From Hyaloraphidium curvatum SAG 235-1 (taxonomy: Eukaryota; Fungi; Monoblepharomycota), in assembly GCA_025558095.1 (NCBI GenBank), contig JAIVFI010000014.1, forward strand, positions 1 to 64,000: a DNA stretch of 64,000 bases, written 5' to 3'. The position numbers were made by a program, and so were the translations under genes. The notes beneath the pieces are model-generated. The model was not told where the DNA came from. It did no database searches and saw nothing but the letters and a program-made list of their open reading frames with translations. Of the stretch, positions 38,273-54,461 are shown piece after piece (within the stretch, counting starts at the first letter, position 1; the number at the start of each line of letters is the position of its first letter).

Positions 38273-39793
38273 TCAATCCGCACTATGGCACACGTTCCCC
38301 ACCGAGAAGCCCACCCCCAGCCCCCTCAGCAGCCCAAACAGCGCCACCACGACCGTCAGCACCGTCGCCGCCGCCGTCCGGATCACCCCCATGGTCACTG
38401 GCACCCCCGCCACCTTTGCGCGGAGGTGCCCCGCCTCGGCGATCGCCTGGTCCAGCACGGCTTCGGTGTCCTGTATCTTCAGGCGGAGCTCCGGCGCACG
38501 GGGACCGAGGTCGAGGAGCAGGGAGCGCAGGCGGGATCGCGCGGCGAGGTGCAGCGAGACGAGCGCGTCGACCTTGCCGTTGGCGCTGGCGACGGTGGCC
38601 AGGTCGACGACGGAGATGGAGAACCACAGCGCGAGGCCGAGGATGCACCAGAGGGGGAGGCAGGAGGAGCCGGCCACGTAGGTGATGGCGGAGAGGAGCT
38701 CGACGAGGAGGACGCCGCCGGTGAAGGAGCGCATGCGGCGGTAGGTGGCGAAGCGTTCCCGGAGGGTGGGCGCCAAGGCGCGGTCCAGGGTCGTGTGGAG
38801 GTCGCCGACGGGCGGCATGGTGGTGTTCGCCTGGTCCGAGTCCGACGCCGCGACAGCGGCCTCGAAGCGCTCGACGAGGGAGCCCAGCGCAACAGAGAAG
38901 GCCCTCATTTCGAGGCGGTTCTCGACGGCGAGAATCGGCAGCGTCTTGACCGTGCTATCAAAGATAATGCCTACCAAAGGGAGATACGTGCCCCAAAGGG
39001 CCAACGTTATGCCGGCCACAGCCGCGCTCCACGCCGTCGTCCAGGTGCTGGCTGCGAGGGTCACCAGCTGCGTGTAGCATTGGAAAATGATGATGGACGT
39101 CCACCAGCCAATAAAGACGGCGCTCTTCGCCAGGATGGTGGATGCCAAGATGCGCGGGGGCTCGGTCCCGAGGCAGCCGGGCCTCGTGCACGGACACCAC
39201 CTGTCGCGTTCGCGATGCTCCAGGAGCACACCACCGCCGTCCTCCGATGCGAGCTGGAACCACCGGGCTATCTGTGCCAGATCGTCGTAGTCCATCGTGT
39301 CCGAAGGCCCCGCCTCATCCTCGCGGTCTCCCTTCGTGTCCCCGTCCGCAAAGTTTCCGCGCTGCATGTCGGCCTGGTACCGCGTGTCGACGATCCCGGT
39401 CACGGTGCCCCACGCGATCGTCAGGATCTGCCACAGCGCGACGGCAACGGTGCTCGCGACGAGCTGCCGCGTTCCGAAGGTGCCCCGCCCAAAGGCCCAC
39501 GGAACGGATAGGAGGGCGAGCTTCGACGCGCCCCCGAGCACCATGTGCGCGTACGTGTACTTTGCGTATGGAGCGAGTGCGGCGCGCATTTTCGCGTATC
39601 GCCTGAGCGGCGGGTAGGGCGACAGCAGCGCCGCCAGTCTCGAGGCCGTCAGCGGATCCTCGCGGCGCAGGGCGGCGGCGGGGTCCGGCGCCGGCGGGGC
39701 CGCCCACGCCGGGAGTCTGTTCGGCGGAGGACGCGCGGGGAGGAGCGCCAGCCATTCCAGCGGCGTGAAGCGGGGCGGGTCGGGGTGGGCCAT
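38273..39793 (-). CDS. Multi-pass (~7 TM) membrane protein, family copy 1
   Basis: 506-aa intronless ORF with about 7 hydrophobic segments; collinear paralogue at 40323-41831. Confidence 0.85.
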   Translation of the reverse strand: MAHPDPPRFTPLEWLALLPARPPPNRLPAWAAPPAPDPAAALRREDPLTASRLAALLSPYPPLRRYAKMRAALAPYAKYTYAHMVLGGASKLALLSVPWAFGRGTFGTRQLVASTVAVALWQILTIAWGTVTGIVDTRYQADMQRGNFADGDTKGDREDEAGPSDTMDYDDLAQIARWFQLASEDGGGVLLEHRERDRWCPCTRPGCLGTEPPRILASTILAKSAVFIGWWTSIIIFQCYTQLVTLAASTWTTAWSAAVAGITLALWGTYLPLVGIIFDSTVKTLPILAVENRLEMRAFSVALGSLVERFEAAVAASDSDQANTTMPPVGDLHTTLDRALAPTLRERFATYRRMRSFTGGVLLVELLSAITYVAGSSCLPLWCILGLALWFSISVVDLATVASANGKVDALVSLHLAARSRLRSLLLDLGPRAPELRLKIQDTEAVLDQAIAEAGHLRAKVAGVPVTMGVIRTAAATVLTVVVALFGLLRGLGVGFSVGNVCHSAD

Positions 39794-40322
39794 GTTCGCG
39801 AGGGAAACGGGGAACGGGGCATCCTCTCCTCGAACGCCTTTCCGCCGCCCTCAACTCCGAAGCAAGGGACCAGCCCATCCATCCGCAAGTCCAAGGCAGG
39901 GACTCCCTCTGCTTCTCATCCGCAGCACCGATCCGGCAGCGGTTCCCCACGACCGAGTCAGACCTTCGCAGCAGGGCAGTCTAGGCAACATTGCAATGCG
40001 AGGAGGGGACGGTCGAAATCGCGGCGAGGTTGATGGAGCCGATGGATCACCCCTTTAGTCCTTTACTTCGAATGGAAGGCGGTACAGCGTGATGAGGCCT
40101 GACGATAAGGTCTTTTCGAGGGCAGTGGGGTTTGGACGCAGAGCGTTACAGGATCGGTCTTGCGGATGATGAACGAGGGGAATACGTTGCGTCGGAAATA
40201 TCGGATTGTATCCGTGCTTACCGATGTTCGCGATTGCCTAACCGAACACGGGCGGAAGCGTGTATAATGGCCCGGGAGAAGCGGACTGACGTGCGGATGG
40301 AGGGAGGGACGCCCGTTCAAAC

Positions 40323-41831
40323 ATGGAGGCCCACCCGCCCCGCTTCACGCCACTGGAATGGCTCGCCCTGCTCCCTGCGCGACCCCCACCGACCAGACTT
40401 CCCGTGTGGGCGGCCCCGCCGGCGCCGGACCCCGCCGCCGCCCTCCGCCGCGAGGACCCGCTGACCGCGTCCCGGCTGGCGGCCCTGCTGTCTCCCTATC
40501 CCCCGCTCCGCCGATACGCCCAAATCCGCGCCCTTGCGGCGCCCTACGCAAGGTACACGTACGCGCACATGCTCCTGACGGGCGCGTCCAAGCTCGCGCT
40601 GCTCTCCGTGCCGTGGGCGTTCGGGCCGGGGACGTTCGGCACGCGGCAGCTGGTCACCGGCACCGTCGCCGTCGCGCTGTGGCAAATCCTGATGCTCGCG
40701 TGGGGAACGGTGACCGGGATCATCGACACGCGGTACCAGGCGGACGTCCAGCGCGGGACGTTCGCCGGCGGGGATGGGAAACTCGACCGGGAGGACGGGC
40801 CCGCGCCCGACGCGATGGACCACGACGACCTGGCGCAGATCGCCCGGTGGTTCCAGCTCGCCTCCCTGGACGCCGCCTGCTTGCTTTTGGAGCACCGCGA
40901 GGGCGACAGGTGGTGCCCCTGCACGAGGCCGGGCTGCCTCGGCAAGCAGCCCCCGCGCATCGTGGCCTGCGCCGTGCTGGCGAAGACCGCCTTCCTCCTG
41001 TGTTTCACGGCGGCGTTCGTGGTGTTCCAGTGCTACACGCAGCTGGTGACCCTCGGCGCGAGCACCTGGACGACCGCATGGAGCGCCGCACTGGCCGGCA
41101 TCTTCTTGGTCATTTTGGGCACGTACGTCCCCATGATATCCCTCATCGTCGAAGTCACCGTCAAGACGCTACCGATACTCGCCGTCGAGGGCCGCCTGGA
41201 GATGCGCGCCTTTTCCATGGCCCTGGGATCCCTCGTCGAGCGCTTCGAGGCCGCCGTCCGGGCGGCCTCGGACCAGAACAGCACCCTACCCCCCGTCGAC
41301 GACCTCCACACCACCCTGTACCGCGCCCTCGCCCCCACCCTCCGCGAACGCTTCGCCACCTACCGCCGCCTGCGCTCCTTCTCGGGCGGCGCCCTCCTCG
41401 TCGAGCTCCTCGCCGCAATCACCTACGTCGCCGGCGCCTCCTGCCTCCCCCTGTGGTGCATCCTCGGCTTCGCCCTCTGGTTCGCCATCTCGGTCGTCGA
41501 CCTGGCCACCGTCGCCCGGGCCAACGGCAAGGTCGACGCCGTCGTGTCGCTGCACCTCGCCGCGCGATCCCGCCTCCGCTCCCTGCTCCTCGACCTCGGT
41601 CCCCGTGCACCCGAACTCCGCCAGCGCATGCAGGATACCGAAGCCGTGCTGGACCAGGCGATTGCCGAGGCCGGGAACCTCCGCGCAAAGGTGGCGGGGG
41701 TGCCCGTGACCATGGGGGTCATCAGAACGGCGGCGGCGACGGTGCTGACGGTCGTGGTGGCGCTGTTCGGGCTGCTGAGGGGGTTGGGGGTCGCGTTTAC
41801 GGTGGAGAGCGTGTGTCCGGGGGCGGATTGA
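40323..41831 (+). CDS. Multi-pass (~7 TM) membrane protein, family copy 2
   Basis: 502-aa ORF alignable end to end with 38273-39793. Confidence 0.85.
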   Translation: MEAHPPRFTPLEWLALLPARPPPTRLPVWAAPPAPDPAAALRREDPLTASRLAALLSPYPPLRRYAQIRALAAPYARYTYAHMLLTGASKLALLSVPWAFGPGTFGTRQLVTGTVAVALWQILMLAWGTVTGIIDTRYQADVQRGTFAGGDGKLDREDGPAPDAMDHDDLAQIARWFQLASLDAACLLLEHREGDRWCPCTRPGCLGKQPPRIVACAVLAKTAFLLCFTAAFVVFQCYTQLVTLGASTWTTAWSAALAGIFLVILGTYVPMISLIVEVTVKTLPILAVEGRLEMRAFSMALGSLVERFEAAVRAASDQNSTLPPVDDLHTTLYRALAPTLRERFATYRRLRSFSGGALLVELLAAITYVAGASCLPLWCILGFALWFAISVVDLATVARANGKVDAVVSLHLAARSRLRSLLLDLGPRAPELRQRMQDTEAVLDQAIAEAGNLRAKVAGVPVTMGVIRTAAATVLTVVVALFGLLRGLGVAFTVESVCPGAD

Positions 41832-41968
41832 GGGGCTGGGCTGGTTTCGGGCGTGGCATAATCTGTACCACCAACGGTGACGGACCCTGGCCGACAATAC
41901 CCTCCTTTTGCACTACGGCTGCAAATTCAGCATCAAACCACTTCATCCGATCCAATCCATTCCCTTCG

Positions 41969-43216
41969 TCAACCGCAGTACCGATCCGGCAACGGCCCCC
42001 CCTTCCGCCCCTGCACAGCCCGCAGGAGCACCTCCCTGTTCCTCCGCATCACGCACCCCCTGGCTTTCTCCAGCGCCCCCAGCACCGCCGGGTAATCTGC
42101 GCGTTCCAGCGCCCGCGCGGCGCCCTCCACCGTGCCGTCCTCGCTCCGCAGCGTCGCTTCCGCCGGGAGGTAAGCGTACGTCCGGAGGAGCTCGGCGGAG
42201 GCGACCAGCGGCGTCAGGGCGATCAGCGACGCCGGCACCGTCGACGAGGATTTCATCCTCGCGTAGCTCCGCCCGTCCGGGCCCAGCGGGGTGAAGGCCG
42301 GGAGCAGCGCGACGCCCGCCGCGATCTCGCCGTAGAACTCGGGGTAGTCCGCCGGGTCCGCCGCGAACGGCGCCACGATGCGGCCCGAGGAGAGGAGATC
42401 CGGCGGGAGCGGGACGTGGCCCATCGAGTTGGGCGGCTCGGCGGTTCCCAGGAGGCGGATGGGGAGCAGCGGGCTGCCGGCGGGGATTTCCCGCGCGCCG
42501 GAAAAGACGGGGGGGTAATCCCGCCGCCTGGCATCCAGTTTGCCCTGCACGACGAGGCCACTGCGTTGTTCCAGCCCGCGGCCGGGGTCGATGGCGGGGG
42601 AGGCGGTGACGAAGTAGTCCACGGAATCGGCGCCGGGCAGGCCGAGGCGGAGCATGTCGGCGCGGACCGCGGCGGCGGTGTGCGGGCCGACGGTGAGCAC
42701 CGTCGCGGGCTGGAACCTCCGCAGGAGCTCCCCCGCCCTGGGCGAGGAGGAGAAGGTGTCCGCGTTGTGGATGAGGAACACGGAGCGGAGCTTGCCCGTC
42801 GCCGTGCACTTTGCCAGCGCCTCGACCTGGTCGCCGAAGAACGTCGGATGCCGCGCGTCGAAGGGGGCGGTGCCGAATATCGCCACGTCGAAGTCGCACG
42901 AGCGGTTGTAGAAGTCGCGGTATTGGAGCGTGCGGCCCGAGAACCAGGGCGCGGTGACCGAGCCGATGCCGAACGACGGCGGGCGGCGGAACAGGAGGGT
43001 CTCCGGGGGCTCGTCGAAGGTGGACAGCGAGTACAGCAACGCGGCGTAGCCGTTCTGATGCCATCTGTTGCCGTTGACCACGGCGACGTGCGGCCGGGGC
43101 GGAGCGGCCGGGGTGGCGGGCGGCGGCGCCGGGCCGCGGACCGAAAACACACCGGCCGCGATGGCCAAAACGGCGGCGACCGCGCGGAGGACGCGGCGGC
43201 GCGGGATCGGCGGCAT
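41969..43216 (-). CDS. Type II membrane putative glycosyltransferase-like protein A, copy 1
   Basis: Basic N-terminus plus TM; alternating beta/alpha pattern, VVQGKLD.RRRDY, LLPAF, KSSSTVPASLIALTPLV; conserved paralogue at 51046-52260; family assignment tentative. Confidence 0.65.
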   Translation of the reverse strand: MPPIPRRRVLRAVAAVLAIAAGVFSVRGPAPPPATPAAPPRPHVAVVNGNRWHQNGYAALLYSLSTFDEPPETLLFRRPPSFGIGSVTAPWFSGRTLQYRDFYNRSCDFDVAIFGTAPFDARHPTFFGDQVEALAKCTATGKLRSVFLIHNADTFSSSPRAGELLRRFQPATVLTVGPHTAAAVRADMLRLGLPGADSVDYFVTASPAIDPGRGLEQRSGLVVQGKLDARRRDYPPVFSGAREIPAGSPLLPIRLLGTAEPPNSMGHVPLPPDLLSSGRIVAPFAADPADYPEFYGEIAAGVALLPAFTPLGPDGRSYARMKSSSTVPASLIALTPLVASAELLRTYAYLPAEATLRSEDGTVEGAARALERADYPAVLGALEKARGCVMRRNREVLLRAVQGRKGGPLPDRYCG

Positions 43217-43378
43217 CGGTGGGCCTTTGCTCGCCGGGCGAAAGCGGTGCAACAATGGGCGGCGGCCGGCGGCCGCCCGGACCCGTTGCCCGCACGAATC
43301 GGCCCTTACAAACAAACCGCCTACTGCCGGCAGATTAGTGGACAGGGAAATGGTTTCCGAGCACGCAAAATCCCGGCG

Positions 43379-44998
43379 ATGAGATTCGGGCGGCGGTCGC
43401 TGGGGAGGGCCGCCGCCGCGGCGCTCGCCGCCCTTTCGCTGCTCCGCCTCGGCGGGCGGCTCCCCTCGACGCCGGACCCGCCGCCCACGCTCGCGCCCTT
43501 TTGCGCGGCGCCCAACTTTGCGCTGCCCGCGGCGGAGGCCGACACGTTGGCGCGGGCGCACCCCAAGACGCACCGGCCGCTGCTGCTGTTCCGCCGGCGG
43601 ACGTCGTGGTTGCCGGCAGCCCCGGCGCCTGCGCGGAACTGCATCCTGGTGGCCGACCTGTGTGCAGCAGCGCAGTCGGCGCACTCGAACCAGATCGTCG
43701 GCCTGGTCCGGTTCGCCGTGCTGTCGAGGGACGTGCTCGGCTGCCGCGCCGTCGAACCTCTCATGTGCCTCCCTCCGCCGTGGGGCACGCCGCGCTTCCC
43801 CGCGTCGTGGTGGTTCGACCTGGACGGCTGGAAAACGGCCGACGGGCGGAAACTGTTCCTTTCGCCCGAGGAAGCCGTCGCGGCGGGGGTGCCGGAGCGG
43901 CTCGCGGCCCCCGATAGCGCGAAGGACGGAGGAGACGTGCCGGTGCTGCCGTGCCTTGTGGACGCGGTGCAGGCCGCCGTCAGGCCCCTCGGCAAGTACG
44001 CCCGCTCCTTCAACTGCTCCGTCGTCGCCCTAGCCTTCGACCGCCCGGGCTTCGCCGCCGACGCCCTCTCCCTGGGCCACACGAACCGCTCCTCGGACTC
44101 CCCCGCCATCCTCGGCGTCCCGGTACCCTACCACCTCCCCATCCTCGCCCCCGCGCGCCCGTGGGACCCCGACCCCCCGTCCACCTCGGACGCCGCCGCG
44201 CTGGCCAACGACGGGAACCGCATCGATCCCCTGCTCTCCTCGCTCGTCGCCCCGCGCGCCTTCTTCTCCGCCGCGGCATCCGCGCTCCTCGCCCTCTCCG
44301 CCCCGCCGGACTTTCCCCTCCCCCCCGAACTGCACGCCCTCCGCAACGCCTCGGACGCGCAGCTCCTCGCGCACCTCTCCTCCCCGGGTCCCCGCTGCCC
44401 CGAAATGCGGTACCTCTCCGCGCACCTCCGCTCCTCCCCCGAATACCTCGCGCACTGCACCGCGCGCGCCGCGGCCGCCCGCGCCGGCTTCGTGTGCGGC
44501 GCGGACCCGACCTCCTCGCCCGCCGCGATCGCACGCGCGGCGGGCTGCTCCCCGCCTCTCCCCGTGCTCCTCTCCGCGGACCTCAAGGGCGAATCGGGGC
44601 TCGCATCCGCCGTCTCCCTCGCCCTGCGCGCGGAATGCGGCGCCGCCTCCCCCGCGCACGCCGTCGAGATCACCTCCCACCCCGCCGTCCAGGCCCTGTG
44701 GCGGATCGCCATCCTCTCGCACTCGGACGCGCATCCCGACCCGCTCCTCCGGATGCCGGTGGGGGACATCCACCTCCTCGCGTCGTGGATCGCGGGGCAG
44801 GTGCTGCTGGCGTGCGGGGAGCGGTTCCTGGGGAGCAGGAGGACCAGCTTCACGGAGCGCGCGGGGGGGTTGAGGGGGTGGGCGGGGAAGGAGGGGGGTT
44901 GGGGGTATCTGCCGGCGCTGGTGGAGGTGAAGGTGGCGGAGGGCGGGCACGGAGGGAAGGGGAAGGAGAAGGGTGACGGTTCGAGGGGGCGGAAGTGA
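43379..44998 (+). CDS. Type II membrane O-fucosyltransferase-like protein B, copy 1
   Basis: TM anchor; HSNQ motif, YLSAHLR (H-x-R, GDP-fucose binding type), FLGSRRTSFT (cf. F-x-G-T-x-x-S-T-F). Confidence 0.65.
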   Translation: MRFGRRSLGRAAAAALAALSLLRLGGRLPSTPDPPPTLAPFCAAPNFALPAAEADTLARAHPKTHRPLLLFRRRTSWLPAAPAPARNCILVADLCAAAQSAHSNQIVGLVRFAVLSRDVLGCRAVEPLMCLPPPWGTPRFPASWWFDLDGWKTADGRKLFLSPEEAVAAGVPERLAAPDSAKDGGDVPVLPCLVDAVQAAVRPLGKYARSFNCSVVALAFDRPGFAADALSLGHTNRSSDSPAILGVPVPYHLPILAPARPWDPDPPSTSDAAALANDGNRIDPLLSSLVAPRAFFSAAASALLALSAPPDFPLPPELHALRNASDAQLLAHLSSPGPRCPEMRYLSAHLRSSPEYLAHCTARAAAARAGFVCGADPTSSPAAIARAAGCSPPLPVLLSADLKGESGLASAVSLALRAECGAASPAHAVEITSHPAVQALWRIAILSHSDAHPDPLLRMPVGDIHLLASWIAGQVLLACGERFLGSRRTSFTERAGGLRGWAGKEGGWGYLPALVEVKVAEGGHGGKGKEKGDGSRGRK

Positions 44999-45693
44999 CC
45001 GAGATCTCCTGTGCCGTGGAAGAGAAGACGGCCTTGAAGAGGGTCTGAGCAAAACCCACTGTGCCGTGAAGCTCAAGAGTCCGTCAAGGAGCTCCCCCTC
45101 CCGTGCCCTGTGACTCTGCCCGACAACACTAGCTATGCCATCCAGTCCTCCGTTTGCGAATCCACCGTAGTCAACGGCCAATTTGTCGCACTCATAGCCC
45201 TGTGCCCCTCATCCGTAGCACACGACCCCTCATCCGCTATCCAATCCTCACCTGTGGCCCCCCGCCCAAACACCTCCGCGGTTCCCCTTCATCACGCAAC
45301 CGCTCGCTCTTTCCAGCGCCCTCTACAGTGCCCTCTGCAGTGCCCTCTGCAGCGCCGGACGGTCCGCACGTTGGTGCTGCTCGCGTGCGGCGACGGGTTT
45401 TCAGGAAGGTGCGGGCGGATCCCGGTGGCCGTTTCCGCGCCGCCGAAGCCGAGATCCAGTCTTGTAACAAGTCCGGTCCGGGGACAGGCATGCGGGATCG
45501 AAGCCGCCTGTTTCCAAACATTCAAGTTGCAGCCGAGCACCTCACTTGCGGCACCTCCGGTCCACAGCGGATGCCGCAAGCTGACGATGCCGCAGCTGTG
45601 CCGGGGTCCAGACTGCTGTGGTGGCCAAGTCCGGAGGGCGCCGAAATAAAATGAAGGTTCTGGCGGCAACAATCCCGCCGAGAGCGCACGACC

Positions 45694-47105
45694 ATGGCGA
45701 AGCTCGCCCCCGCCCTGCTCTGCTGCGCCTTGCTCGCGTTGGAGCTCGCCCGGCCGGCGCTGGGCGCGACGCAGTTTGTCGCGGCGCCGCCGTGGTGCGT
45801 CCGGACGTCGGCGAAGCGGGTCGGCGATGCTGACGGTTGCCGTCCATTCGATCCAGCTGCGCCGGCTGTGCGGACACAAAGTACCTCCCCGCTCCGTGCT
45901 GTACGTGCCGTCCGCAGACCCTCGCATTGCTGGTGCTGACCGGCGGCGACGCGCCACAGGCTGCCTCTCCGTGCCGCCGACGACCGCCACGCGCTTCTGG
46001 ACGATATCGGTCTCCACCACTTCGGTGGTTCTGACCACGACCACGGTGACGAATGCGCCGCTGCGGAGGAGGAGGGCCGCGGCGGCGGATGGCGGCCCGG
46101 AGGCGGTGGAGGTGGCTGCGGCACCCGCTCGCGGGCTGCCGAGGTCACTTGCCCCCGAGCCCGAGCCCGGGATGCCGCAAGCCATCTCGGTGCCGCCGCG
46201 CGCGGGTTCGGGCAGCTGGTTCGGCCGGCGCGCCACGGACATCTGCTCGCTCTGCCCCGGCGGCGCTTCGGTCAGCACGAGCCTCGCCGGGCTGCAGTCC
46301 GGCTCGGACCCGGTCGAGTTCTGCTGCACGCGGCGCACGGTGACCTCGTTCCGCGCCACCGTGTTGACGAGGACCTTCACGACCACGCGGGTGGTGACCA
46401 AGGTCGTGTCGGCGACGGCGACGGGGACGACGGTGCGCATCCATGCTCGGGTCCGGGTGCGAGCTGATCTCCGTTCACGCTTTAGACCGCTACCCGGACG
46501 TCCACCACGCGGACGACGAGCAACACGCGCACCTCGACGAGCCGGACGGCCACCAACACCCGGTCGCGCACGCAGACGGCGTCGACATCGGCGACGGTCA
46601 CGCCCCAGACGTCGACCACGCGGCCACCGGCGCCGCCAAAGGTCGATCCGGGCGCTCCCGGTGCTTCGACCACAGCCGGAACGGAGACGACGGGGGTTGC
46701 GGCAACGGAACAGCGAGCCACCAAGGAGACGCCCCCCGCGACTGACGCCCAGACCACCACGGAAGCCGTCACGACCACTGTGAGCGGCGCTTGCACATCC
46801 TCCGAATCATCAGCCTGACGATTCGGCAGGAAACCGCGACGGCGACGCTCCCCGGCGGCGACCTCCTCACCCCGTTCCCCACCCTCACCGGCGAGCCCCC
46901 CGTCGAAGCCTGCGCCTTCGGCCCCGACGGCGGCAGCCTCTGCGAGGGCTGCTGCGGATTCGGCGTCACCGACATCCTCGACATCCAGCTGCGGTGCTTC
47001 GGCTTCGCGCAGCAGAACGAGCGCGCGTGCGGGGCGCGCGGCGGACGGTGCAGGAGCTGCGGGGCGGGGGAGGCGTGCGTGCAGGGGTTGTGCCGGGCCG
47101 TGTGA
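45694..47105 (+). CDS. Secreted Thr-rich mucin-like protein with Cys-rich modules; ~4 introns
   Basis: Signal peptide MAKLAPALLCCALLALELARPALG; long Thr/Ser tracts; C-terminal Cys-rich domain ending CVQGLCRAV. Confidence 0.65.
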
Positions 47106-47266
47106 TGCGGCGCGGCGGATGGATGGAGGCGGCCTGGATGGAGGCAGCGCGCACTAGAGTTCAGATCTCGCACGCTGATGATGGGTCACGTGACGTCGAG
47201 GGATCTCCCGCAGAGCCCTATACTGTCTTTTGGGAAGAGCCCCGCCGGCGGGGTTCTTTTCCGCGG

Positions 47267-48172
47267 ATGGCGGCGCCGCCTGTCCTCCGCGCCGCGCTCG
47301 CCGTGCTTTGTGCCGCCGCGTGTGCCGCACTGCTCATCCTTTGCGGCATGCGGGCCGGGGGCTCCGCGCCGGCCCCGCCGGGGGTGGTGCCGCCGCGCGA
47401 CGCCGCGCGGTGGCTCGTCGAGCTGCCGGTCGACCCGAACGGCGACGGCCGCGCGGACCGCTGGCCGCTGCCTGCGCTGCTCGCCGCGGGCCTCCCGCCG
47501 CGGTTCACCGCGGCCGATGGCGGCATCCGCCTGCGCGCGCCCGTCGACGGCGCGCGCTCGCGCACGTCGCGCTTCGTGCGCTGCGAGCTGCGCGAGTCGG
47601 CGCCGCTGCCCGGCCGCGCCGCGGGCGCCGCGCGGGAGAGCCAGCCGCGGAGCACCAGGGCGCCGGACTGGCCGTGCGTGACCTCGTCGCGGGCGATGCG
47701 GGTGGAGCTGGCGGTGCTCGCGGTGCCGACCAACTCGCCCCGCGTCATCGTCATCGTCGCGCAGCTGCACGACCTCGAGTCCGACCTCGTGCACGCCCAG
47801 TACCGCGGGAGGGGCGGCGGCGTCGGCCGGGGCCGCGTCGAGCTGGCAGTCAACAACGGCCGGCAGCGCACGTCCCTGGACGACGACTACGCGCTCGGCG
47901 ACACCCTGCGGCTGGAGCTCGAGCTCGATCGAGGCGATCTCCGCGTGGGGTACCTCAACACGCGCACCGGCCGCGGCGCGAACAGGACGCGGCGGTTCCG
48001 CATCGACCCCGGGCTCGTCGTCGGCGGCTGCTTCTTCAAGACCGGCTGCTACGTGCAGGCGTACAGCTACAACCGGACATACGGCGGGATCCGCGTGCCG
48101 GCTCTCGTGGACGACCCCGAGGCGTTTGCCGAGGTGCTGCTGAAGAGGGTCAGGCTGGGGGGCTTGCGTTGA
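47267..48172 (+). CDS. Polysaccharide lyase family 7 (alginate/glucuronan lyase-like) with N-terminal signal/anchor
   Basis: RCELRE (cf. RSELRE), AQLH (cf. QIH), FFKTGCYVQ (cf. YFKAGxYxQ); intronless. Confidence 0.82.
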   Translation: MAAPPVLRAALAVLCAAACAALLILCGMRAGGSAPAPPGVVPPRDAARWLVELPVDPNGDGRADRWPLPALLAAGLPPRFTAADGGIRLRAPVDGARSRTSRFVRCELRESAPLPGRAAGAARESQPRSTRAPDWPCVTSSRAMRVELAVLAVPTNSPRVIVIVAQLHDLESDLVHAQYRGRGGGVGRGRVELAVNNGRQRTSLDDDYALGDTLRLELELDRGDLRVGYLNTRTGRGANRTRRFRIDPGLVVGGCFFKTGCYVQAYSYNRTYGGIRVPALVDDPEAFAEVLLKRVRLGGLR

Positions 48173-48548
48173 CCGTACCACCCGGCCCTTCCCAATGGCA
48201 GTTACGGAGGTTGAGGATGCCCGATCCAACTCGTCACAACGTCCTGCCGGACATGCACCGCGATGATCCCCACCGGCTCCGGCGGGAAGCCCGGGATCGA
48301 TCCCCTTTCCGCCCCGTCGTCGCAGCCATCGCCGCCCGCATCCCCGTGGACGACCCACCGACGCATCGCCCGAGCCAGTCTCCGCCATCCCGAAACCCGT
48401 CCCGGATGGTCTCGAGCCGCCTTGTCCTCCGGACGCCGTGGCCGCCGGGGATCGGAGCGGAGCAATCCCGGGAAGCCCAGCGCACCGCCACGCGTCCGTG
48501 CGTTCCGACCCCCCCCGACACGCCTCCTCGTGCCAGACACCGGCCGCG

Positions 48549-49124
48549 ATGCCGGGCACCCCCGGCCCCTCCGCGACGGGGGACACCGCTCTCGCCCCGT
48601 TCCGCGCGTTCGACCCGTCCCGCGCCGCGTGGGTCTCCCCCGACGGGCTCCCCGCGGCCGCGCGCGCGCTGCTCGTGCATTCGGGGACGATGACCGCGCG
48701 GCTGCGGGCGCACCACGGGGAGGACATCGCGATCGCCGTCGTGCGCGCGGCCCCGGTCGAGGCGGGGGAGGGGAGGCTGCTCCGCGCGTCGTTGCTAAGG
48801 GGAACGGAGACGGGCAGGCCGCTGGAGCTCGGGTTCCTGGACGTCCGGACCGATCTTTTGCCCCCGAGGGCGCAGGAAATGGCAGTGCAGGCAGAGGTGC
48901 CGTTCGGCGCGGTCCTCGTTGGGCAGGGGGTGCCGCACTCGTGCCATCCGGGGGGGTACTTCGCGTTGGAGGCGGGCGCGTGGGTGGCGGGGTTGCTGGG
49001 GGCGAAGGAGGGGGAACTGCTTTACGGGAGGTGCAACGTGATCAGGACGGGGGAGGGGGAGGTGCTGGCCGAGGTGGTGGAGGTGCTGCCGCCCGAGCGG
49101 CCGGACGCGGGCTCGGAGGATTGA
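48549..49124 (+). CDS. Chorismate lyase (UbiC/DUF98)-like fold protein
   Basis: LLVHSGTMTARL, LLRASLL, VPFGAVL, LYGRCNVI, VVEVLPP follow the chorismate-lyase-like pattern. Confidence 0.6.
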   Translation: MPGTPGPSATGDTALAPFRAFDPSRAAWVSPDGLPAAARALLVHSGTMTARLRAHHGEDIAIAVVRAAPVEAGEGRLLRASLLRGTETGRPLELGFLDVRTDLLPPRAQEMAVQAEVPFGAVLVGQGVPHSCHPGGYFALEAGAWVAGLLGAKEGELLYGRCNVIRTGEGEVLAEVVEVLPPERPDAGSED

Positions 49125-49213
49125 GGCGGGAGGGTGGGCTACGGAGCATGGGAAGGGGAACTTCTTCGCGGAGATTTTGGGAACCTTGAGCTTCACGGTG
49201 GAGTAGATCTTGC

Positions 49214-50884
49214 TCAGACCTTCTTCACGACTGTCGGCACGGTGGATCTCGGTAATTTCCTCCCCTTCGACCCCTCCCCCTTCTTCTTCCCCTTCCCTCC
49301 GTGCCCGCCCTCCCCCAACTTCACCTCCACCAGCGCCGGCAGATACCCCCAACCCCCCTCCTTCCCCGCCCACCCCCTCAACCCCCCCGCCCGCTCCGTG
49401 AAGCTGGTCCTCCTGCTCCCCAGGAACCGCTCCCCGCACGCCAGCAGCACCTGCCCCGCGATCCACGACGCGAGGAGGTGGATGTCCCCCACCGGCATCC
49501 GGAGGAGCGGGTCGGGATGCGCGTCCGAGTGCGAGAGGATGGCGATCCGCCACAGGGCCTGGACGGCGGGGGGGGAGGTGATCTCGACGGCGTGCGCGGG
49601 GGAGGCGGCGCCGCATTCCGCGCGCAGGGCGAGGGAGACGGCGGATGCGAGCCCCGATTCGCCCTTGAGGTCCGCGGAGAGGAGCACGGGGAGAGGCGGG
49701 GAGCAGCCCGCCGCGCGTGCGATCACGGCGGGCGAGGAGGCCGGGTCCGCGCCGCACACGAAGCCGGCGCGGGCGGCCGCGGCGCGCGCGGTGCAGTGCG
49801 CGAGGTATTCGGGGGAGGAGCGGAGGTGCGCGGAGAGGTACCGCATTTCGGGGCACCGGGGCGGCGCGGGCGAGGAGAGGAGCGCGAGGAGCTGCGCGTC
49901 CGAGGCGTTGCGGAGGGTGTGCAGTTCGGGGGGGAGGGGAAAGTCCGGCGGGGCGGAGAGGGCGAGGAGCGCGGATGCCGCGGCGGAGAAGAAGGCGCGC
50001 GGGGCGACGAGCGAGGAGAGCAGGGGATCGATGCGGTTCCCGTCGTTGGCCAGCGCGGCGGCGTACGAGGTGGACGGGGGGTCGGGGTCCCACGGGCGCG
50101 CGGGGGCGAGGATGGGGAGGTGGTAGGGTACCGGGACGCCGAGGATGGCGGGGGAGTCCGAGGAGCGGTTCGTGTGGCCCAGGGAGAGGGCGTCGGCGGC
50201 GAAGCCCGGGCGGTCGAAGGCTAGGGCGACGACGGAGCAGTTGAAGGATCGGGCGCACTTGTCCACCGGCCTGACGGCGGCCTGCACCGCGTCCACCAGG
50301 CACGGCAGCACCGGCACGTCTCCTCCGTCCTTTGCGCGATCGGGTGCCACGAGCCTTTCGGGCACCCCCGCCGCTATGGCCTCCTCCGCCGACAGGAACA
50401 AGTCCCGCCCTTTGGAAGCCTTCCAGCCGCCCAGGTCAAAGAACCACGACGCCGGGAAGCGGGGTGTCCCCCATTGCGGCGGGAGGCACATCATTGGTTC
50501 CGCGGCGCGGCAGCCCAGCACGTCCCTCGCCAGCACGGCGAACCGGACCAGGCCGACTATCTGGTTCGAGTGCGCCGACTGCGCTGCTGCACACAGGTCG
50601 GCCACCAGGATGCAGGGCCGTGGAGCGGCGGGGGCGGCCGGCAGCCACGACGTCCGCCGGCGGAACAGCAGCAGCGGCCGGTGCCTCTTTGCGTGCGCCC
50701 GCGCCAACGCGTCGGCCTCCGCCGCGGACAGCGCAAAATTGGGCGCCGCGAGGAACGGCGCGAGCGAGGCCGGCGCGGCCGGCGGAAGCCCGGGGGCGCG
50801 GATCCGCGCGGCCGCCGCGAGCACGGAGAGGGCCGCAAGCACAAAAGCGCCCGCCCTCCGGATCTTCCGGAACGGCATCCGCAT
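49214..50884 (-). CDS. Type II membrane O-fucosyltransferase-like protein B, copy 2
   Basis: Paralogue of 43379-44998 with the same motifs; C-terminus about 13 aa longer. Confidence 0.65.
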   Translation of the reverse strand: MRMPFRKIRRAGAFVLAALSVLAAAARIRAPGLPPAAPASLAPFLAAPNFALSAAEADALARAHAKRHRPLLLFRRRTSWLPAAPAAPRPCILVADLCAAAQSAHSNQIVGLVRFAVLARDVLGCRAAEPMMCLPPQWGTPRFPASWFFDLGGWKASKGRDLFLSAEEAIAAGVPERLVAPDRAKDGGDVPVLPCLVDAVQAAVRPVDKCARSFNCSVVALAFDRPGFAADALSLGHTNRSSDSPAILGVPVPYHLPILAPARPWDPDPPSTSYAAALANDGNRIDPLLSSLVAPRAFFSAAASALLALSAPPDFPLPPELHTLRNASDAQLLALLSSPAPPRCPEMRYLSAHLRSSPEYLAHCTARAAAARAGFVCGADPASSPAVIARAAGCSPPLPVLLSADLKGESGLASAVSLALRAECGAASPAHAVEITSPPAVQALWRIAILSHSDAHPDPLLRMPVGDIHLLASWIAGQVLLACGERFLGSRRTSFTERAGGLRGWAGKEGGWGYLPALVEVKLGEGGHGGKGKKKGEGSKGRKLPRSTVPTVVKKV

Positions 50885-51045
50885 CGCGGCGGCCGCGCTC
50901 CATGCGCGGGAAGGTGCGGAGTTGCCCGGGGTGGCGCATGGACGCACGGATCAGCAGGGGATCGCCAGCCGCCCGCCGGCCGCACAAGGACGCAACGGGG
51001 GATCAACAACAGGGGATCGTTCGCGCACCCGCACGGTTCCCGAAG

Positions 51046-52260
51046 ATGTCGCCCGTCCCCAGACGCCGCGCGCTCCGGGCGGTAGCAGCGGTCTTTGCCC
51101 TCGCCGCCGGCCTCCTGTCCGTCCTCGGCCCGGCGAGGCCGCCGTGGCGGGTCGCCGTCGTCAACGGCAACAAGTCCCACCAAAACGGCTACGCCGCGCT
51201 CCTGTATGCGCTCTCGACATTCGACCGGCCCCCGGAAACGGTCCTGTTCCGCCGCCCGCCCTCGTTCGGCATCGCCTCGGTCACCGCCCCCTGGTTTTCC
51301 GGCCGCACGCACCACTACAAGGCCTTCTTCAACCGCTCGTGCGAGTTCGACGTCGCGATATTCGGCACCGCCCCCTTCGACGCGCGGCATCCCTTTTTGC
51401 ACGAGGAGCAGGCCGCGGCGCTGGCCAGCTGCACGCGGACGGGCCGGCTGCGCTCCGTCTTCATCGTGCACAACGCGGACACCTTCTCCTCCTCGCCCAG
51501 GGCGGGGGAGCTTCTGAGGAGTTTCCAGCCCGCGACGGTGCTCACCGTCGGCCCGCACACCGCCGCTGCGGTCCGCGCCGACATGCGCCGCCTCGGCCTG
51601 CCCGGCGCCGATTCCGTGGACTACTTCGTCACGGCATCCCCGGCCATCGATCCCGGCCGCGGGCTGGAACAGCGCAGCGGCCTGGTGGTCCAGGGCAAGC
51701 TGGACACGGGGAGGAGGGACTACTACCCCACCATCTTTGACGGCGCCCGGAACCTCCCCAACGGCAGCATCCTGCTCCCCATCCGCCTCCTGGGCCGCGC
51801 CGAGCCCACCAACTCGACGGGCTACCTCCCCCTCCCGCCCGATCTCCTCGAATCGGGCCGCATCCGCGCCCGCTTCGCCTCGGAGCCGGCCGACTTCCCC
51901 GAGTTCTACTGGTCCCTCGGCCGCGGGGTGGCCATCCTCCCCGCCTTTGCCCGCGGAGCCGGCTACTCGAGCCTCAAATCATCCTCCACGGGGCCGGCGT
52001 CCCTGATCGCCCTCACGCCGCTGGTCGCCTCCGCCGAGCTCCTCCGGACGTACGCTTACCTCCCGGGGGAGGCGACGCTGCGGAGCGAGGACGGCACGGT
52101 GGAGGGCGCCGCGAGGGCGCTGGAACGCGCGGACTACCCGGCGGTGCTGGGGGCGCTGGAGAAAGCCAGGGGGTGCGTGATGCGGAGGAACAGGGAGGTG
52201 CTCAGGCGGGCTGTGCAGGGGCGGAAGGGGGAGCCGCTGCCGGATCGGTACTGCGGGTGA
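51046..52260 (+). CDS. Type II membrane putative glycosyltransferase-like protein A, copy 2
   Basis: Paralogue of 41969-43216. Confidence 0.65.
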   Translation: MSPVPRRRALRAVAAVFALAAGLLSVLGPARPPWRVAVVNGNKSHQNGYAALLYALSTFDRPPETVLFRRPPSFGIASVTAPWFSGRTHHYKAFFNRSCEFDVAIFGTAPFDARHPFLHEEQAAALASCTRTGRLRSVFIVHNADTFSSSPRAGELLRSFQPATVLTVGPHTAAAVRADMRRLGLPGADSVDYFVTASPAIDPGRGLEQRSGLVVQGKLDTGRRDYYPTIFDGARNLPNGSILLPIRLLGRAEPTNSTGYLPLPPDLLESGRIRARFASEPADFPEFYWSLGRGVAILPAFARGAGYSSLKSSSTGPASLIALTPLVASAELLRTYAYLPGEATLRSEDGTVEGAARALERADYPAVLGALEKARGCVMRRNREVLRRAVQGRKGEPLPDRYCG

Positions 52261-52814
52261 GGCACGGGATGTTGTTCACGAGCCGGCTCTCGCGGCACGC
52301 CGAGTAACTCAGCGCTTACCAAGGCCGCAAGGCTGCCTCGGGATGTGAAACGACTGTCGATCTGGATCTGTCGGCCTGCTCGACCGGTGGGTTCCAGCGG
52401 GGCGACAGAAGGGGCACAATGTCAGGACGCACGCGGGGTCCGATCGCCCTTCCGCGCATCTGCCGCTGGTCCCGTCGCTGCTGGGCCCTAGGCAACCGAT
52501 CCTGACTACGACGGGCGAATGAACACCGGCACCGTGCGGCGTGCAAACCTGCCGGGAACGGGGAAATCAAATTCGCTGACGAGACCCACAAGAACCGCCT
52601 ACCGACACAAGCCAAATTAGCCGAAGAAGCACTCCGATGGAAGCCATCAAAAGATCATCCGTGTTTGGCACGGCACGGCAGATCCCCGGCGCGGAAGATT
52701 AGAAGATGGAGAGTGGCCGCTAAGGCCCGCTCCCCAAATCCTGCACAGCCCGGGAGACAACACATTTTAGCACGTCGCAAGCGGGCCCCTGAAGCGTACA
52801 AGCAGACAGCAACG

Positions 52815-54461
52815 ATGACAAACACTCCCGAAACCCTTCCCGTCCTCGTCGTGGGCGCGGGCCCCGTGGGCCTCACCACCGCCGCGCTCCTCGGCGCGTG
52901 GAACATCCCGCTCCGCTTCGTCGACAAGGCCGCCCAGCCGACGGACAAGTCCAAGGCCCTCGTGCTCTGGCCGCGCACGATGGAGCTGCTCGCCTCCCTC
53001 GGCATCGCCGGCCCTTTCCGGGCCGCGGGCACGCCGGTGCGCGCGGTCGGGATCCACTCCAACGGCGCGCCGCTGGCCGCGATCCCCTTTGGCGCCGAGC
53101 ACCTGCCCGACACGCAGTACCGTTCCCCCAACATGATCGCGCAGAGCGAGACGGAGAGGCTGCTGAACGCGCACCTCGTTGAATCGGGTGTCGCGGTCGA
53201 GAGGCCGGCGGAGCTGCTGGGTTTCCGCGACGAGGGGGCGCAAGTCGAGGCCACGCTGCGGCTGGCCGACGGCAGGGAGGAAGTCGTACGGTGTGCCTAC
53301 ATCCTGGGGTGCGACGGGGCCCACAGCGCCGTGCGCAAGCTCGCCGGGATCCCGTTCTCGGGCAGCGCAACGCCCAACTACTGGTGGCTCGCCGACGTCA
53401 AGGTGGAAGGGGACCTACCCGACGACGAGATCTCCATCTTCTTCTCGGTGCACGGCACGCTGGTGTTCTTCCCCTTCGGCGGGCGCGTGCGCGTGATCGC
53501 CGACCGCGGCGAGATGCTCGATGCGGAGAAGCCCGAATCGTTCACCGTGGCGGACATGCAGAGGATCGTTGACGAACGGGCTCCGCGGGGCCTCAAACTG
53601 TACGACGAGGTGTGGTTGTCGGGCTTCCGGATCAACGAGCGGATGGTCGAAGACTACCGAAAGGGCCGAGTCATACTTGCTGGAGACGCCGCGCACATCC
53701 ACAGCCCCGCCGGAGGCCAGGGTGGGTCATGCGATCCAGATACCCAGGATTGGCATCTCGTGAACACGTCGCCACCAGGAATGAACACGGGCATGCAGGA
53801 CGCCTTCAACCTCGTCTGGAAGCTCGCGCTGACCTACAAGGGCCTCGCCCATCCTTCCCTCCTCGATACCTACTCCCGCGAGCGTAAGGCCGTGGGCCGC
53901 GCCGTGCTGTCACGGGCCGAGGAGATGACCTTTGCCGCGACGCTGCGCAACCCGGTGGCAAGGATGGTGCGGGACTGGGCCGTGTCGGCCGCGCTGTCGT
54001 TCGGGTTCGCGAAGAGGGCGATGGTCCGGTTCCTCACGGAGCTGTCGGTGGGGTACCCGGGGAGCCCGATGAACGGAACTGGGGATGGGCGCGGCGGGAT
54101 AGCGGTCGGGGATCGGGTTCCGGACCTGGAGGTCCAGGCGACGGACGGGCCCAGGCTGCACGACTTCCTGGGTGCCACATCGTGTCACCTCATCCTCTTT
54201 ACATCCAAGGATGAGGATCGCCAGGCGATCACGGACCTCGCGGAAAAGTGCCGATCGGCCTTCCCCGGGCTCGTCGAGGTCATCAAGATCGGCGGCGAGG
54301 CAAAGGACGGCGAGCTGGGTGACCCCGATGGAGCAGTTGCTACTACCCTCGGCGCTCCGGTGGCCTTGGTAAGGCCCGACGGGTACCTCGCTTACCGGGG
54401 CTCGGCCGATCCCAACCAGCTGCTCGAGTACCTGTCCCGGTTTCTGGTGCGTGCGTCTTGA
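52815..54461 (+). CDS. FAD-dependent aromatic monooxygenase (PheA/TfdB-like); in-frame intron 53722-53778
   Basis: VVGAGPVGL, GCDGAHSAVRK, LAGDAAHIHSPAGGQG|MNTGMQDA, LVRPDGY. Confidence 0.92.
   Translation: MTNTPETLPVLVVGAGPVGLTTAALLGAWNIPLRFVDKAAQPTDKSKALVLWPRTMELLASLGIAGPFRAAGTPVRAVGIHSNGAPLAAIPFGAEHLPDTQYRSPNMIAQSETERLLNAHLVESGVAVERPAELLGFRDEGAQVEATLRLADGREEVVRCAYILGCDGAHSAVRKLAGIPFSGSATPNYWWLADVKVEGDLPDDEISIFFSVHGTLVFFPFGGRVRVIADRGEMLDAEKPESFTVADMQRIVDERAPRGLKLYDEVWLSGFRINERMVEDYRKGRVILAGDAAHIHSPAGGQGGSCDPDTQDWHLVNTSPPGMNTGMQDAFNLVWKLALTYKGLAHPSLLDTYSRERKAVGRAVLSRAEEMTFAATLRNPVARMVRDWAVSAALSFGFAKRAMVRFLTELSVGYPGSPMNGTGDGRGGIAVGDRVPDLEVQATDGPRLHDFLGATSCHLILFTSKDEDRQAITDLAEKCRSAFPGLVEVIKIGGEAKDGELGDPDGAVATTLGAPVALVRPDGYLAYRGSADPNQLLEYLSRFLVRAS

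Follow-up and report, generated by a model that had tools for sequence, protein, structure and literature searches.

Glycan-synthesis gene clusters are routine in bacteria and rare in eukaryotes, where the galactosaminogalactan (GAG) cluster of Aspergillus is the standard example. Among the exopolysaccharide operons of bacteria, those for alginate (algL, encoding a PL5 lyase), Pel (pelA) and Psl (pslG) include a gene for a degrading enzyme. The GAG cluster of Aspergillus fumigatus comprises five co-regulated genes, uge3, gtb3, agd3, ega3 and sph3, with an epimerase, a transferase and hydrolases among their products (PMC4817252). Here we describe a candidate cluster of this general kind at positions 41958 to 52271 of a 64-kb window, the whole stretch of DNA analysed, with which a 752,701-bp contig (JAIVFI010000014.1) of Hyaloraphidium curvatum SAG 235-1 begins. 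H. curvatum is a freshwater fungus of an early-diverging lineage, the Monoblepharomycota; its genome assembly holds 31.9 Mb in 55 contigs with 69% G+C.

The locus carries two inverted copies of a pair of genes, here called A and B, for predicted type II membrane glycosyltransferases, and between the copies lie genes for a threonine (Thr)-rich secreted protein, a PL7-family polysaccharide lyase and a small DUF98-like protein. We hold the gene identities and folds as assigned below with high confidence. For the larger reading, that the locus is a glycan-biosynthesis and remodelling (build-and-trim) gene cluster whose donors, product and co-regulation we infer, the case is evenly balanced. The locus holds two uncharacterised transferase families, and the evidence in part supports placing it within a known kind of system, the eukaryotic glycan gene cluster.

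As in the GAG cluster, of the described systems the nearest to this one, a second locus of the same genome, on contig 6, sets a GalE gene beside transferases and two genes for cleaving enzymes. Compared with the glycoside hydrolases of the GAG cluster, the cleaving enzymes of H. curvatum are predicted beta-eliminating lyases (PL7 and PL29-like), which implies a uronate-containing substrate, and the transferases are small and of the type II Golgi type whereas GAG has a multi-pass synthase. The H. curvatum loci also differ in having no deacetylase and in the inverted duplication of the window version, and their co-regulation and product are putative. With the algL, pelA and pslG operons the locus shares a chain-cutting enzyme beside synthesis genes; unlike them it is eukaryotic, with separate promoters and secretory-pathway topology. 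An earlier interpretation made from the DNA letters (the sequence-only reading) had named no described eukaryotic cluster of this kind as known to it, and so overlooked the GAG cluster (PMC4817252); its argument from fucose and glucuronic acid polymers in Mucoromycota walls does not apply to a member of the Monoblepharomycota. The features of the locus are as follows (coordinates are those of the window; aa, amino acids; GC3, G+C content at third codon positions).

41958–45082, strand not applicable: left arm of the inverted duplication, complementary to 49180–52271
41969–43216, minus strand: A-left, 415 aa, type II membrane protein with a GT-B (GT4-like) fold (predicted structure; GC3 0.93)
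43217–43378: A/B divergent spacer of the left arm, 162 bp from start codon to start codon, a presumed bidirectional promoter
43379–44998, plus strand: B-left, 539 aa, type II membrane protein with a fucosyltransferase-type GT-B fold, POFUT1-like (predicted structure, motifs)
~45694–47105, plus strand: Thr-rich secreted protein gene, spliced, with a cysteine (Cys)-rich C-terminus (RNA contig, exon composition)
47267–48172, plus strand: PL7-family polysaccharide lyase, 301 aa (PF08787)
48549–49124, plus strand: small gene related to the DUF98/chorismate-lyase type, 191 aa (codon-position G+C, RNA contig, profile match)
49180–52271, strand not applicable: right arm of the inverted duplication (repeat search)
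49214–50884, minus strand: B-right, 556 aa, copy of B, 89–93% identical to B-left
50885–51045: A/B divergent spacer of the right arm, 161 bp from start codon to start codon
51046–52260, plus strand: A-right, 404 aa, copy of A, 79–82% identical to A-left

The repeat search resolves the 3.1-kb inverted duplication into five collinear blocks, 80–96% complementary, on either side of a unique 4.1-kb core with the three inner genes. Together with the coordinates and strands it bears out the order A(−) B(+) core B(−) A(+) given by the sequence-only reading, and the spacing of about 160 bp claimed for the head-to-head A and B genes of both arms comes to 162 and 161 bp. Coding frames are set cleanly by codon-position G+C, with GC3 of at least 0.9. 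Against the 31.9-Mb genome, arm DNA finds, besides the arms themselves, only two short weak matches, both at a paralog on contig 35. The locus is flanked by unrelated genes, namely a seven-transmembrane (7TM) family, a kinase and a uridine kinase, and an Rfam scan of 41000–53500 returned no RNA family. The public sequencing run consists only of contigs, which are spliced and therefore derive from RNA. An assembly artefact was rejected as the source of the duplication, because the arms differ by 4–20% and the RNA contigs equal the left copy without differences.

Comparison of the copies yields dN/dS (nonsynonymous over synonymous substitution rate) values of 0.37 for A and 0.45 for B, indicating that both are under purifying selection. 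Synonymous divergence is a mosaic: in 50-codon blocks of B it ranges from 0.00 to 0.38, with 0.00 across codons 251–500, and in A from 0.07 to 0.47, with 0.47 at the N-terminus. This pattern points to repeated gene conversion between the arms. Inverted repeats of such length, in which some blocks have a synonymous divergence of zero, show ongoing recombination between the arms and could also form an invertible switch, in which recombination between the 3.1-kb arms flips the 4.1-kb core and changes the promoters or 3′ regions that it faces. We regard such a switch as highly improbable, however, as the three core genes each have their own upstream region inside the core and an inversion would change little.

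At the N-terminus of A, of B and of the PL7 protein, a few charged residues precede a hydrophobic stretch, which is visible in the translations, as had been noted before, and which appears as a helix in the structural models of A (residues 6–23) and B (residues 4–26). Both models were made with AlphaFold2 (AF2). That of A, built on six paralogs, has a predicted local distance difference test score (pLDDT) of 73.6 and a predicted template-modelling score (pTM) of 0.76. Its top Foldseek matches are all GT-B proteins, with E values around 1e-8 (3.6e-8). When it was compared with 48,161 chains by VIA-align, the highest Z scores were obtained with BshA (20.3; root-mean-square deviation 3.8 over 318 residues), PimA (19.9) and PimB′ (19.2), each superposition spanning about 315 residues; the best 28 matches are all glycosyltransferases, and the 50 matches listed are nearly all GT-B-fold proteins. 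In the predicted structure, two Rossmann-like domains superpose on those of solved GT-B enzymes, the fold that the sequence-only reading had expected for A.

A accordingly resembles the GT4-type retaining GT-B enzymes BshA, PimA and PimB′ in its two-Rossmann-domain fold (Z 19–20) and departs from them in sequence. It has no Pfam or NCBIfam match at E ≤ 1, and the GT1/GT4 Pfam models (Glycos_transf_1 and others) match none of 50 members of its family. The residues invariant in the family are H150, Q224-G225, R232, S324-S325, P336 and Y347, and the classic E-x7-E pattern of GT4-type enzymes is not among them. Assignment of A to CAZy family GT4 was rejected, since neither A nor 49 relatives show membership by sequence profile. 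An exhaustive profile search recovered 573 relatives at E ≤ 1e-3, the named ones being trebouxiophyte algae (Auxenochlorella, Myrmecia, Symbiochloris, Micractinium) and ascomycete fungi (Saitoella, Orbilia/Arthrobotrys, Aureobasidium). As judged from the model, A is a type II membrane GT-B protein of a eukaryotic family that has neither a classification nor a Pfam model.

B likewise has no match to PF10250 or any other Pfam family at E ≤ 1, and none to NCBIfam. Its AF2 model (pLDDT 64) retrieves POFUT1 or POFUT2 in all of the top 26 Foldseek matches. In VIA-align the Z score is 18.4 with POFUT1 (about 297 residues), 14.3 with POFUT2, 13.8 with FUT8, 12.8 with NodZ and 11.3 with AtFUT1, and it falls to 6.0 at the next, unrelated match; this clear gap above unrelated Rossmann folds places the modelled fold in the GT65/GT68/GT23/GT37 superfamily. 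The protein language-model neighbours of B belong to the O-FucT (O-fucosyltransferase), FUT8 and XG_FTase clusters. All five B paralogs carry S-N-Q shortly after the catalytic part begins, a central H-(L/V/S)-R and a C-terminal motif III of the G-x-x-x-S-F type with the core R-(S/T)-(S/T)-(F/Y)-(S/T)-(E/Q)-R. When B was aligned by hhalign with the Pfam-verified O-FucT proteins of its own genome, only the C-terminal motif aligned (80% probability, E 1.3e-5, 43 columns). Based on these motifs, the predicted fold and the language-model and hhalign comparisons, B is best described as a divergent member of the fucosyltransferase superfamily. A POFUT-like fold, and H-x-R and FxGTxxSTF-like motifs, had been anticipated from the letters. 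Like POFUT1 (GT65) and POFUT2 (GT68), B keeps the fold and the S-N-Q, H-x-R and G-x-x-x-S-F motifs; compared with them it is longer by about 150 residues and contains disordered inserts, besides lacking the PF10250 match.

B was also rejected as a Pfam O-FucT (PF10250) protein by a six-frame genome scan, in which the profile recovers other genes and not B. One gene of canonical POFUT1 type lies on contig 44 (PF10250, E 2.6e-36), so that the genome encodes a standard protein O-fucosyltransferase besides the divergent B family. One B paralog occurs on both contigs 17 and 47 with identical scores and identical coordinate offsets, and the same is true of two matches resembling GDP-mannose 4,6-dehydratase on contigs 33 and 53; in the assembly, such duplicates represent haplotigs or else segmental duplications of very recent date. 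PDB sequences yielded no meaningful match to A-family or B-family profiles, and a word-index protein search with A and B returned only the copies in their own genome.

The family PL7 includes fungal subfamily 4 glucuronan lyases (PMC7911691). The PL7 gene of the core, so named already by the sequence-only reading, encodes a protein that matches PF08787 (Alginate_lyase2) with 62.7 bits, above the curated cut-off of 29.7 (E 5.9e-17). Its motifs R-C-E-L-R-E, A-Q-L-H and F-F-K-T-G-C-Y-V-Q align to RTELRE, GQIH and YFKAGVYNQ of solved PL7 enzymes (alginate lyases), and the signature residues are kept: the R of R-x-E-L-R, the Q and H of Q-L-H and the second Y of YFKAGxY, which we take to be catalytic. 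The protein is predicted to be a lyase that cuts uronate-containing chains by beta-elimination. It shares Pfam family and signature motifs with PL7 lyases and differs from them in its N-terminal hydrophobic segment, a signal peptide or anchor, and in an F for Y at the first position of YFKAG. The genome holds two PL7 genes, the window copy and one paralog.

The Thr-rich gene was described by the sequence-only reading as encoding a mucin-like protein; it is real, transcribed and rich in Thr, but the open reading frame taken for it was too short, because the gene is spliced, ends in a Cys-rich exon and is longer than any single reading frame. A 1011-nt RNA contig covers 46103–47216 and skips 46433–46485 and 46780–46829, both GT..AG introns on the plus strand. 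For the first intron, eleven candidates keep the frame open. The exons are the following.

~45694–459xx, plus strand: exon 1, with a signal-peptide-like hydrophobic start at 45694, read directly; boundary approximate
~4596x–46432, plus strand: exon 2, 157 codons
46486–46779, plus strand: exon 3, 98 codons; 37% Thr, 9% Ser, 9% Pro
46830–47102, plus strand: last exon, 10 Cys in 91 aa

No exon matches a Pfam domain when each is searched singly. The signal peptide and the stretch rich in Ser, Thr and Pro make the product a mucin-like secreted protein and a candidate O-glycoprotein.

The small gene at 48549–49124 is coding by composition (GC3 0.90–0.94, GC1 above GC2 on the plus strand) and lies under an unspliced RNA contig. 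It has two homologs, one of which is named chorismate-pyruvate lyase by the Joint Genome Institute (JGI). A profile of the three sequences matches PDB 2nwi (‘hypothetical protein’) with an E value of 7.8e-6 over 148 of 200 positions, and 2nwi is presumably a DUF98 protein. PF04345 and PF01947 match neither the small-gene protein nor its two homologs, and have no match in six-frame genome scans. Of the earlier proposal that the gene is UbiC-like, the link in fold stands at profile level only and the Pfam chorismate-lyase match is missing; the gene appears related, at a remote level, to the DUF98/chorismate-lyase-type fold. It is probably a bystander without link to glycans. One homolog lies on a prokaryote-style metagenome contig, among genes for sulfotransferases, an APS kinase, an AMP-binding enzyme with a carrier protein, and a radical SAM enzyme, a setting that may indicate involvement in a pathway to a sulfated small molecule or glycolipid rather than in ubiquinone synthesis.

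The second locus, within 12 kb of contig 6 (~819.5–831.6 kb), consists of six consecutive sugar-metabolism genes.

Gene 1: GalE (TIGR01179, E 1e-117)
Gene 2: O-FucT protein with an extra C-terminal domain (PF10250, 4.5e-9)
Gene 3: GT32-type Gly_transf_sug protein (5e-18)
Gene 4, plus strand: PL7 paralog, the sole other PL7 gene (65.3 bits, 9e-18)
Gene 5, minus strand: membrane-anchored beta-helix PL29-like protein (DUF4955, 1.6e-32; BT3328 family, 6e-52)
Gene 6, plus strand: A paralog, the closest to the window A, with an intron

BT3328 of Bacteroides thetaiotaomicron is a PL29 chondroitin/hyaluronan lyase (PMC6994673). The PL29-like protein matches the BT3328-family model as well as DUF4955, but it scores 177 bits against an equivalog cut-off of 1100 bits and, in contrast to BT3328, is fungal and membrane-anchored. 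The PL29-like gene and the A paralog stand head-to-head, about 123 bp apart, and the PL7 gene is 2.5 kb from the A paralog. For both PL7 genes of the genome, the distance to an A-family gene is no more than about 3 kb. Window and contig 6 have an arrangement in common: PL7(+), a partner(−) and A(+), the partner being head-to-head with A. Judged by eye, the extra domain of the O-FucT protein is GT8-like in its D-x-D and H-x-x-G-x-K patterns; the domain has no Pfam match.

A third A paralog, on contig 5 (~901.4–905.7 kb), lies on the same strand as, and directly downstream of, a gene for an 872-aa fusion of a DegT/DnrJ/EryC1 aminotransferase with a short-chain dehydrogenase/reductase (SDR). The SDR half best matches GDP-fucose synthase, and by its sequence the fusion represents a bacterial-style amino-deoxy-sugar pathway in a fungus. 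In Myrmecia bisecta a distant A homolog adjoins an NDP-sugar epimerase/dehydratase gene. No sugar-related genes are evident next to the remaining A paralogs of H. curvatum. Genes for GDP-mannose 4,6-dehydratase and NDP-sugar dehydrogenase are present in the genome, from which we take deoxyhexose and uronate donors to be available.

The relatives of these genes raise the possibility of a foreign island, that is, of glycan genes that came from bacteria, algae or giant viruses and were amplified afterwards, whose clustering would reflect origin and not co-function. The nearest A relatives outside H. curvatum are trebouxiophyte algae and some ascomycetes; the language-model neighbours of A include a Nucleocytoviricota cluster, and a chlorovirus transferase matches its fold at Z 17.7. 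For PL7, PL29 and GalE the best-matching models are bacterial, introns are absent from A, B and PL7, and the DUF98-like homolog on the prokaryote-style contig sits in compact, operon-like packing. By contrast, G+C content and GC3 are those of the host, the Thr-rich gene has typical short introns, the A paralog on contig 6 has an intron, and the genome contains at least five diverged A paralogs, which argues for long residence. We consider a foreign island improbable.

The main alternative is that the genes are coincidental neighbours: two Golgi transferase genes underwent an inverted duplication, the PL7 protein is a secreted nutritional lyase for algal or bacterial polyuronides, and the likeness to contig 6 is inherited synteny. 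We treat this as a serious possibility, if not a probable one. Many of the observations that favour it weigh against a functional cluster. Both the A pair and the PL7 pair of window and contig 6 are about 56–57% identical, as from a single duplication, and with such equal divergence (~56%) the adjacencies may share one ancestor and not be two independent observations. The recurrence of linkage, which the sequence-only reading had proposed as a check, holds for A and PL7 on contig 6, but the B paralogs have no A gene, lyase or obvious sugar neighbour in their own genome, and the surroundings of three distant A homologs in other organisms contain no lyase or fucosyltransferase. In metagenomes, neither a scan with the A trio nor one with the PL7 pair turned up a relative. 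The A/B spacers of the two arms align poorly and are more diverged than the coding DNA, and the only word shared among seven upstream regions is a chance-like GC-rich 8-mer present in four of the seven, so that there is no common promoter motif. In the single RNA run, contig depths across the locus are very unequal (9–76) and the 5′ half of PL7 has almost no contig cover. The unrelated flanking genes also fit coincidence, and PL7 could equally be a nutritional enzyme directed at algal or bacterial polyuronides.

Synteny alone, however, leaves the contig-6 run of six sugar-metabolism genes unexplained. A has a short divergent spacer with a glycan-active partner at both loci, the third A paralog abuts sugar-nucleotide enzymes, and both lyases, like the transferases, carry a putative N-terminal hydrophobic anchor. 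On these grounds we retain a build-and-trim cluster as the preferred interpretation, and rate the functional coupling of the transferases with the lyase itself at just short of an even call.

In such a cluster, A, B and further transferases would assemble an acidic, possibly deoxyhexose-bearing glycan in the lumen of the Golgi or endoplasmic reticulum, as a free wall or matrix polymer or as O-glycans on the Thr-rich protein. The lyase would cut uronate-containing chains by beta-elimination and thereby trim, release or remodel the product, a role likened to that of AlgL in the bacterial alginate operon and of Sph3 and Ega3 in the Aspergillus GAG cluster. Fucose is a tentative choice as the donor of B, and we lean slightly away from it; PF10250-type folds include transferases for sugars other than fucose, such as the plant GT106 rhamnosyltransferases, which also counts against a fucosylated product. 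The most specific form of the proposal is that H. curvatum makes an endogenous acidic (uronate-containing), possibly fucosylated wall or matrix glycan, or a heavily O-glycosylated mucin, by operon-like clusters in which Golgi-type transferases from a GT-B family not yet characterised are combined with PL7 and PL29 lyases anchored in the membrane. In this form it is doubtful. No papers on wall glycans or lyases of Hyaloraphidium came up in a literature search.

If gene position predicts enzymes that work together, the locus would provide a working hypothesis for a widespread GT-B family of eukaryotes that no Pfam model covers, with its 573 relatives in algae and fungi, and likewise for a divergent fucosyltransferase-like family; it would also suggest that polyuronides are metabolised endogenously in a fungal lineage that diverged early and about whose wall chemistry next to nothing is known. 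Lyases acting as built-in trimmers would vary the theme of the eukaryotic cluster in a new way and would offer a biochemical handle, as the lyase substrate should equal the cluster product. In the most specific form of the proposal, H. curvatum would possess a eukaryotic system that synthesises and cuts a polyuronide, and the A family would constitute a new glycosyltransferase family in CAZy.

Some minor observations concern transcripts and neighbours of the locus. A further RNA contig, with a depth of 258, touches only 47804–47821 and 45932–45955 and was rejected as a spurious GC-rich match. Beside the left arm, two divergent genes at 38276–41828 encode multi-pass membrane proteins without Pfam domains. 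B-left is covered by RNA contigs at 43584–44438 and 44893–45518. The second of these extends 520 nt beyond the B-left stop codon and is deeper than the contig on the B coding region; it contains no clear coding frame there and represents either a long 3′ untranslated region or a separate transcript.

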